DNA of 64,000 bases from Auanema rhodensis (lineage: Eukaryota; Animalia; Nematoda): contig OZ059898.1 in assembly GCA_964057225.1 (NCBI GenBank), positions 15,314,001-15,378,000 on the forward strand, in the 5' to 3' direction. A program made the translations under genes and the position numbers. Shown piece by piece: positions 57,428 to 59,120 of the stretch. Within the stretch, counting starts at the first letter, position 1, and each line of letters starts with the position of its first letter. The notes under the pieces were generated by a model. That model searched no databases. It saw only the letters and a program-made list of their open reading frames with translations, and was not told the DNA's origin.

Positions 57428-59120
57428 ATGCCTTTAGCAGATTTTGAATATGTTGAATTTTTGGTTTCAAATGCTAGTCAGGTACGTTTTCAACTTGTTG
57501 AAGCATTTTTATTTGAAAACTTGCTAACTTTCAGTCAGCTTACTGGTACTGTTCATGTTTTGGTTTTGAACGATTTGCTCAGAAACAAACGAATAACGGG
57601 TGTTCAATAGCTGTTAGAAATGGAAAAGTAAGTTGGAAATTTGAAAATTATCTGATTTTTTCTGTTTTTCAGACAATTTTTCTTTTGACTTCATTCACAA
57701 ATTTTCCTCCAAATATGGAAGAACGACTTCGAAATCATGGAGATGCTGTGTGTAACATTGGATTTAGGGTAGATGACATACATGCTATAACGGAGGTAAA
57801 ATATTAATTTTTGGATTTCTAAGCTGCACAACAGCTTAATTTGAACAAGTTTTGAAGCAAGTAAGCCGTCAAGTTTCTTTTAATTTTTGTTTTTTCAGAG
57901 ATTAATCGAGAAAAAAGTGAAAATCATAGAAGAATTATCTAAAGAGCAAGATGATAATGGACATATTGTTTCTGTGAAAATTCAAGCTTGCGTTGGTTTA
58001 TTTTTAAATTTTTATGAAAAATTAAATATTTTTAGGAAACAGATTTATTACATACACTTATTGATAGATCAAATTATTTTGGAACATTCTTACCTGGTTA
58101 TAAACTGATTGAGAATTTTCCATTATTCTCTAGCTTGTTAGTTATACTATTTTAAAGTTTTTTAAGAGTTTTAATCTCAAACTTTTATGTTAAATCGAGC
58201 TTTTCCTGAGTTTCAGAACCTTTTTAGAAAGGATATACCTATTCGGATGACAGATCATGTAGTTCAAAACTATCCGATTGATACAATACCTGATGTCGAG
58301 GAGTGGTATCTGAATTCGTTGAATCTGCAACGTTTCTGGTATCATCATATGATTTCGTTTAAAACTTATTGTTTTTACCCTTTCTCGTAGGTCGATTGAT
58401 GATCAGATTCGTCAAAAGGAAGATTCTGCTATCAAGGCTCATCTGCTTACCAATGAAGAACGATTAGTACAGATGACGTTGGTTGAATCGATGAAGCACA
58501 ATCCAACAGATCAGATATCGGTAACATTGATTGATCAATAGATTCATATGATTTCATATAAATTCTTCAGGAATTTTTGAAATTCAATGGTGGATCTGGA
58601 GTACAACATATAGCTTTACTAGTTGATGACATCATATCAAGTATAGAAATGATGAAACAAAGGTTTTCTTTCGAATTATTTCTTAGAAAACATCCGTCGC
58701 TCATGTTACTTGTTTAAGATCTGTGGAATTTCTTGTAGTTCCATCAACATACTATGATATGCTTGAAGAACGATTGAAAGTATCTAAAGTTGAAGTTGAA
58801 GAAGATTTGAATAAAGTAAGTTGTAACACAAACCATTTCTTATTCAATGTTTGTTATAGCTCAGAGAATTGAATATACTAATAGATTTTGATGATAATGG
58901 CTATTTATTACAAATCTTTACCAAACCTTGTCAGGATCGTCCAACACTTTTCTTTGAACTTATTCAAAGGCATAATTTTGACGTAAAGACTCAATTCATA
59001 TACGATAGTTCAGTTAATACGGTACTACTCTTTCAGGGCTTTGGAGCAGGCAATGTTAAAGCTTTGTTTGATGCTGTAGAACGAGAGCAAGAACTTCGAC
59101 GAGCAGCTGCATTGATGTAA
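57428..59120 (+). CDS. 4-hydroxyphenylpyruvate dioxygenase-family protein (divergent paralog, C. elegans C31H2.4-like), 366 aa, 11 exons
   Basis: Exons 57428-57481, 57535-57627, 57673-57795, 57899-57991, 58036-58136, 58228-58338, 58391-58520, 58571-58662, 58719-58815, 58860-58982, 59037-59120 (1101 nt). Motifs: [57 protein letters not shown]. The 2-His-1-Glu iron triad is intact. Confidence 0.93.

Follow-up and report, generated by a model that had tools for sequence, protein, structure and literature searches.

4-Hydroxyphenylpyruvate dioxygenase (HPPD; EC 1.13.11.27), represented by HPD in humans and HPD-1 in nematodes, forms homogentisate. 4-Hydroxymandelate is the product of bacterial hydroxymandelate synthase (HMS) and of mammalian HPDL, which makes it for the CoQ10 headgroup and bears a sequence that targets it to mitochondria. 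How animals convert tyrosine into the precursor of the ubiquinone ring is only partly understood; in mammals, HPDL and 4-hydroxymandelate were recently identified as part of this route. Nematodes also encode the C31H2.4 family, named after the Caenorhabditis elegans gene, which is annotated but functionally uncharacterised and whose orthologs are named 4-hydroxyphenylpyruvate dioxygenase in databases. Here we describe a gene of the nematode Auanema rhodensis located between 57428 bp and 59120 bp of a 64,000 bp stretch of DNA, referred to as the window (assembly GCA_964057225.1, contig OZ059898.1, positions 15,314,001 to 15,378,000, forward strand). Judged from its sequence, we lean towards this gene being an ortholog of C31H2.4 with a remodelled substrate pocket that would not complete homogentisate formation, the leading candidate reaction being benzylic hydroxylation to 4-hydroxymandelate.

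The pocket positions concerned have been studied in several enzymes and are numbered here as in human HPD unless stated otherwise. In the HMS-type binding mode, Ser226 forms a bond to the 4-hydroxyl; Phe364 is stacked against the ring of the substrate; in HMS, Ser201 bonds the phenol of hydroxymandelate (PMC13260116). The human N241S mutant showed an uncoupled reaction that led to oxepinone, the equivalent mutants of the rat and S. avermitilis enzymes formed quinolacetic acid, and S. avermitilis P214T, which corresponds to human P239T, formed oxepinone (PMC13260116). F337 and F341 of the S. avermitilis enzyme correspond to human F364 and F368; its F337I mutant lost approximately 98% of the activity and its products were hydroxymandelate, oxepinone and homogentisate (PMC3739788). 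Substrate binding and the first attack by oxygen both depend on Q251, Q265 and Q334 (PMC3739788).

Placement in the C31H2.4 clade

The protein used in alignments and trees was a joined 366 amino acid model built from the window sequence, which has no entry in the protein collection searched. A whole-library profile search with the open reading frame (ORF) at 58869-59117 as the query returned mostly fragments, along with full-length nematode proteins; the protein of the window itself was not among them. Further searches with a Rhabditophanes protein, then a Necator protein, as queries revealed two kinds of HPPD-family protein in nematodes. These were resolved in a careful maximum-likelihood tree of 61 proteins, in which the canonical nematode HPD-1 proteins formed a group with short branches, separate from a C31H2.4 group (support 100/99). 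The latter comprised proteins of Caenorhabditis (including C. elegans C31H2.4), Haemonchus, Necator, Nippostrongylus, Dictyocaulus, Steinernema, Strongyloides, Panagrolaimus, Bursaphelenchus, Aphelenchoides, Onchocerca and Plectus. The A. rhodensis protein was located within the clade V part of this group (support 99/95). Its best identities were 58% to Necator and 50% to C31H2.4, and the joined model was approximately 46% identical to canonical HPPDs over at least 360 residues. Both paralogs were present in C. elegans, Necator, Dictyocaulus and Nippostrongylus.

By this placement the A. rhodensis gene is the ortholog of C. elegans C31H2.4, an old HPPD paralog that occurs across chromadorean nematodes beside canonical HPD-1. 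An earlier note on this DNA had called it an HPPD paralog with an HPD-like backbone, which agreed with the tree; C31H2.4, to which the gene is now assigned, had been named there merely as a comparison. The orthologs carry the Pfam domains PF13669 and PF00903 (two VOC domains). They are of similar length to the A. rhodensis protein, and neither it nor any of them has an N-terminal extension.

Two side observations concern other nematodes. The Onchocerca members of the clade (P0020 and P0154) have Ile/Gly/Thr/Ile at positions 226/239/241/364, and the branch leading to them is very long. Among the best 120 matches to a nematode HPD-1 query there was no filarial canonical HPD-1, while ascarid ones were present; filariae may keep only the divergent paralog. 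Additionally, one of two HPD-1-like proteins encoded on one contig of Parelaphostrongylus tenuis (P0326) had Ser/Leu/Thr/Val at the four positions, although it was 76% identical to C. bovis HPD-1; this may reflect a faulty gene model or a recent, divergent copy.

Substrate-pocket residues

In PDB alignments with human HPD, exon 6 of the A. rhodensis gene was anchored as far as residue 209, exon 8 from residue 254 onwards and exon 10 at residues 317-356. Exon 7 alone had no match in the PDB, even at E 10, so its positional homology was taken from the flanking exons. Together with the Trp codon that is split across the preceding intron it encodes 44 residues, the same length as human 210-253, and its ends (WS.DD and Q-I) are conserved; it was therefore aligned without gaps. 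Compared to human HPD, the changes were S226A, P239T, N241V, P243S, S250D and F364V, and the residues retained were H183, H266, E349, Q251, Q265, Q334, F336, F359 and N363. The iron ligands had been reported as intact, and His165, His248 and Glu331 of the A. rhodensis protein indeed aligned to the H183/H266/E349 triad of the HPPD family. The motifs SAIKAHL, TDQIS, VQHIA, FFELIQR and GFGAGNV quoted in the earlier note were found in exons 7, 8, 10 and 11, with QMTLVES at exactly 58470-58490. The substitutions that it had assigned to the active-site Ser, Pro and Asn, and to the Phe of GNF, fell on those very positions in the gapless alignment.

Canonical HPPDs, such as human HPD (5ec3), share the fold family, the iron triad and the Gln triad with the A. 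rhodensis protein, and exon 10 is nearly identical between them. The canonical set Ser226/Pro239/Asn241/Phe364, which is needed for homogentisate formation, was found in 224 of the 285 full-length family proteins fetched, including C. elegans HPD-1, whereas all four residues are replaced in A. rhodensis (Ala/Thr/Val/Val).

Comparison of the C31H2.4 clade with canonical HPPDs, ranging from bacteria to vertebrates, revealed 36 positions that are replaced in the clade although their conservation in the canonical proteins is at least 85%, with clusters at 186-188, 226-228 and 237-244. Beside the first iron ligand, G186 was Gln or Glu and Q188 was Tyr or His. In the pocket strands, S-I-V at 226-228 became A-W-L (S226A, I227W, V228L), and K-M-P-I-N-E-P-A at 237-244 became Q-[MVI]-T-[LI]-x-E-x-V (K237Q, P239T, A244V). 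P239T was found in 29/29 sampled clade members and S226A in 26/29; P239 was kept by no member, and N241 was replaced by Ala, Val, Cys, Thr or Ile and was never Asn. The A. rhodensis protein had the residues A/T/V/Q/M/Q at 226/239/241/237/244/186, that is, it shared S226A, P239T, the loss of N241, K237Q and the DHVV[QE]N motif with its orthologs but had Met at 244 instead of the clade-wide Val. It also differed from them by His rather than Trp at 227, by the C-terminal tail (RRAAALM compared to RGTL...) and by F364V; within the clade, F364 was replaced only in the A. rhodensis protein (Val) and in Onchocerca (Ile). The earlier note had treated the changes as those of a single nematode enzyme, but S226A, P239T and the loss of N241 characterise the clade as a whole, beginning with Plectus, and F364V alone is special here. 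As the same replacements recur clade-wide, they are not chance substitutions. The C31H2.4 clade has thus, as read from the alignment, replaced the residues that steer the second half-reaction, and has done so in a conserved way.

The same positions were then compared with HMS. In the A. orientalis HmaS structure (2r5v) the PDB alignment revealed Ser201, the stretch V-T-L-T-L-I-E-P containing Thr214 and Ile216, and S-S-N-I ending in Ile335. The Thr and Ile that the earlier note had given for HMS at the Pro and Asn positions were therefore read directly in 2r5v. Ile335 aligned to human F364 and to Val346 of the A. rhodensis protein, in which Thr214/Ile216/Ile335 are matched by Thr221/Val223/Val346. 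The pocket residues of S. coelicolor Hms include Ser221, Val223, Ile236 and Ile355. An HMS-type sequence was also obtained from the Streptomyces sp. NBC_01450 plasmid NZ_CP109481.1 (L001:3983-6186; best PDB match 2r5v, E 4.5e-86), which encoded Thr/Leu/Val at 239/241/364 and Ser at 226. Its ORF overlaps an FMN 2-hydroxyacid oxidase gene at the stop and start codons, which is the classic hmaS-hmo arrangement; this stretch of the plasmid carries no annotation in the gene table of the plasmid collection. The three positions are thus altered in the same direction, to Thr at 239 and to aliphatic residues at 241 and 364, in the bacterial enzymes and in A. rhodensis.

In the 61-protein tree the HmaS-like sequence was located on a distant, very long, separate branch. 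HMS is therefore no relative of the A. rhodensis protein and the likeness between them is convergent, as had been proposed. No linked hydroxymandelate oxidase or Hpg genes were found at the A. rhodensis locus, where the neighbours are tRNA genes.

Changes at these positions were also seen in unrelated HPPD-family proteins. A protein of the sponge Sycon (P0089) had Thr/Gly/Thr/Phe and a metagenome protein (P0055) had Val/Pro/Glu/Ile, while the metagenome scaffold L002:3-1024 encoded I-V-V-N-I-T-G-P and GNV. The fragment from this scaffold (P0012) was considered as a relative on account of its GNV and was rejected, as it belongs to an unrelated divergent HPPD-like gene. The same HPPD sites may have been remodelled repeatedly in unrelated lineages.

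Predicted reaction and alternatives

The first half-reaction is probably intact in the A. rhodensis enzyme: an arylpyruvate, most likely 4-hydroxyphenylpyruvate, would bind Fe(II), and oxygen activation and decarboxylation would yield an Fe(IV)-oxo species and an arylacetate. The second half-reaction would have to proceed with every residue known to hold the intermediate for ring C1 attack and side-chain migration replaced, and ring hydroxylation with migration of the side chain would not be completed. On account of this loss, homogentisate is probably not the main product. As positions 239/241/364 read Thr/Val/Val compared to Thr/Ile/Ile in HMS, the leading candidate is 4-hydroxymandelate, which would be formed by benzylic hydroxylation in the cytosol; taken by itself, this product is our best single guess and a tentative one.

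Several points weigh against this assignment. Single HPPD mutants at 239 or 241 give the reactive oxepinone or quinolacetic acid and not hydroxymandelate (PMC13260116). The contact made by Ser201 in HMS is missing, since the A. rhodensis protein has Ala208 there; the change of Ser to Ala, which the earlier note had listed among the altered residues, is for the same reason not an HMS trait. The resemblance to HMS, as aligned, comes down to three residues, and the protein is otherwise HPD-like. Phe364 is retained in most of the clade, which limits the full three-residue match to the A. rhodensis protein, and Onchocerca reads Gly/Thr/Ile at 239/241/364. Furthermore, the clade carries other substitutions that could bring homogentisate formation back, and in a C. 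elegans metabolic model the HPPD step is assigned to 'hpd-1 OR C31H2.4'.

The last two points would fit a redundant second true HPPD, in which other substitutions of the clade compensate for the loss of Pro239 and Asn241 and homogentisate is still made. All of the iron ligands, Q251, Q265, Q334, F336, F359 and N363 are retained, as this would require, the database name of the orthologs is that of HPPD, and C31H2.4 is co-expressed with tyrosine-degradation genes, clustering with hgo-1, fah-1 and hpd-1. We nevertheless regard redundancy as somewhat unlikely. S226/P239/N241/F364 are otherwise unchanged from bacteria to vertebrates, and in bacterial, rat or human enzymes a mutation at 239, 241 or 364 leaves homogentisate formation uncoupled or almost abolished (PMC13260116, PMC3739788). 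Since the divergence of Plectus the clade has moreover maintained a set of residues that differs from the canonical one but is itself conserved, which argues for a changed function and not for redundancy. In a literature search C31H2.4 turned up in screens or in expression and network lists, and no link to hydroxymandelate, HMS or HPDL was found.

The reshaped far end of the pocket raises the question of the substrate. With Ser226, the 4-hydroxyl contact, replaced by Ala, position 227 occupied by Trp in the clade and His here, and Leu at 228, the substrate might be another 2-oxo acid, for example phenylpyruvate, indolepyruvate or an aliphatic acid like 2-oxoisocaproate; aliphatic 2-oxo acids are known to be accepted by HMS and HPPD (PMC7856465). 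However, the clade shows no variation at Q251, Q265 and Q334, which reportedly form bonds with the 4-hydroxyl and prepare the first step, and the co-expression of C31H2.4 is with tyrosine catabolism. Another substrate appears unlikely to us, though it is a serious rival to the main reading.

Formation of 4-hydroxymandelate would bring the nematode enzyme close to HPDL in function, as HPDL is likewise an animal HPPD-family enzyme proposed to divert 4-hydroxyphenylpyruvate from homogentisate. The two differ in sequence and targeting. HPDL is reported to be approximately 35% similar to HPPD, whereas the C31H2.4 clade is approximately 46% identical to HPPDs and branches with animal HPDs. HPDL has an N-terminal mitochondrial targeting sequence, whereas in the A. 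rhodensis protein the first conserved strand is preceded by 5 residues, with an SL1 acceptor 31 bases before the ATG and no ATG upstream. What appears to be new here is an animal HPPD paralog, separate from HPDL, with a putative HMS-like set of product-steering residues. Any link to ubiquinone is speculative. It is conceivable, if doubtful, that a duplicate of HPD gave rise to a separate 4-hydroxymandelate synthase in chromadorean nematodes (the C31H2.4 clade, in its fullest form in A. rhodensis and filariae), independently of HPDL and HmaS, and that this enzyme supplies the step from tyrosine to 4-hydroxybenzoate in the synthesis of the ubiquinone headgroup.

A nematode-wide paralog has lost exactly those residues that HPPD needs for homogentisate, and in A. 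rhodensis the third position, too, is occupied by an HMS-type residue. C31H2.4 is handled as a second HPPD in metabolic models; the reading proposed here is a concrete alternative hypothesis that would be cheap to test in C. elegans, and the gene is also carried by the parasites Haemonchus, Necator, Strongyloides and Onchocerca. That two unrelated lineages have altered the same few positions in a common direction bears on how the product is chosen in the HPPD family.

Gene structure, expression and surroundings

A three-frame reading of 57000-60500 together with RNA contigs showed that the gene consists of 11 exons on the forward strand, with the ATG at 57428 and the stop codon at 59118-59120 (Table 1). 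The earlier note had placed it at 58391-59120, which does hold exons 7-11 but leaves out the first six exons and with them DHVVQN (58253-58270, exon 6), which it had quoted as an iron-ligand motif. All 10 introns are GT..AG introns of 44-103 bases. When RNA-like contigs of three runs were aligned to 57300-59250, each run contributed one contig of 1142-1154 bases that skipped exactly ten GT..AG intervals; intron 5 (58137-58227) was fixed by the contigs of all three. The contig of run X11 had eight additional letters, CAAGTTTG, preceding the AG at 57395-57396. These letters correspond to the 3′-terminal part of the nematode SL1 leader, and their presence on the contig identifies the molecule as a trans-spliced mRNA and the organism as a nematode. 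No ATG was present in the 31-base 5′ untranslated region (UTR). These data show that the gene is transcribed and that its transcript is correctly spliced and trans-spliced to SL1. Over the substituted codons there were no differing letters in the RNA contigs of the three runs or in DNA contigs under a second organism label, so the unusual codons are not assembly errors. Pfam searches with single exons gave only two weak matches.

Table 1. Features of the A. rhodensis C31H2.4-like gene, with positions in the window
Feature	Position	Strand	Evidence
SL1 trans-splice acceptor (AG 57395-57396) and 5′ UTR	57396..57427	+	RNA contig, run X11
Exon 1: start codon; protein starts 5 residues ahead of the first beta-strand motif	57428..57481	+	RNA joint 57481/57535
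Exon 2	57535..57627	+	GT..AG joints, RNA contigs
Exon 3: weak Pfam match to the HPPD N-terminal domain (PF14696, E 0.097)	57673..57795	+	RNA contigs
Exon 4	57899..57991	+	RNA contigs
Exon 5	58036..58136	+	Joint from 58136 to 58228 skips 91 bases, GT..AG, three RNA runs
Exon 6: DHVVQN (58253-58270); iron ligand His165 (human H183); Gln168 at canonical Gly186	58228..58338	+	PDB alignment, RNA contigs
Exon 7: divergent substrate-pocket strands; Ala208 (S226, 58437-58439), Thr221 (P239, 58476-58478), Val223 (N241, 58482-58484), Gln233 (Q251)	58391..58520	+	Gapless 44-residue fit between anchored flanks
Exon 8: VQHIA; Gln247 and iron ligand His248 (human Q265, H266)	58571..58662	+	Aligns to human HPD 254-282
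Exon 9	58719..58815	+	RNA contigs
Exon 10: LLQIF, FFELIQR; Gln316, Phe318, iron ligand Glu331 (human Q334, F336, E349)	58860..58982	+	Human HPD 317-356, E 9e-16
Exon 11: GFGAGNV; Asn345, Val346 (human N363, F364; GTT 59055-59057), C-terminal helix, stop codon	59037..59120	+	Alignment, RNA contigs

The terminal branch of the A. rhodensis protein was 0.78, compared to a median of 0.15, and was the longest in clade V. Relaxed constraint on a decaying or non-catalytic copy could produce such a branch, and would also be in keeping with an exon 7 too divergent to match any PDB chain alone, with the different C-terminal tail and with the changes at G379, T380 and S250. Against this, the 366-codon frame is intact, the splice sites are canonical, the transcript is trans-spliced and every catalytic residue is kept. 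Residues that are invariant family-wide are changed at two sites only (F364V and G379A), which is fewer than in Bursaphelenchus, and the long branch is therefore due to variable positions. Decay is, in our judgement, very improbable.

Intron 10 (58983-59036) is in frame and free of stop codons, so that an 83-codon ORF (58869-59120) runs through it. Many of the database 'proteins' that matched this region are likewise fragments of animal HPD genes produced by read-through, in which QRHNHQ and GFGAGNF are separated by unrelated letters. Upstream of the gene, a low-complexity tandem repeat at 56399-56681 contains ORFs that read SLSLSLNKSLF several times. Directly downstream there are eight tRNA genes (59451-62058), in which tRNA-Glu(CUC) on the reverse strand alternates with tRNA-Arg(ACG) on the forward strand; the first two Glu/Arg pairs sit in near-identical units of approximately 449 bases.

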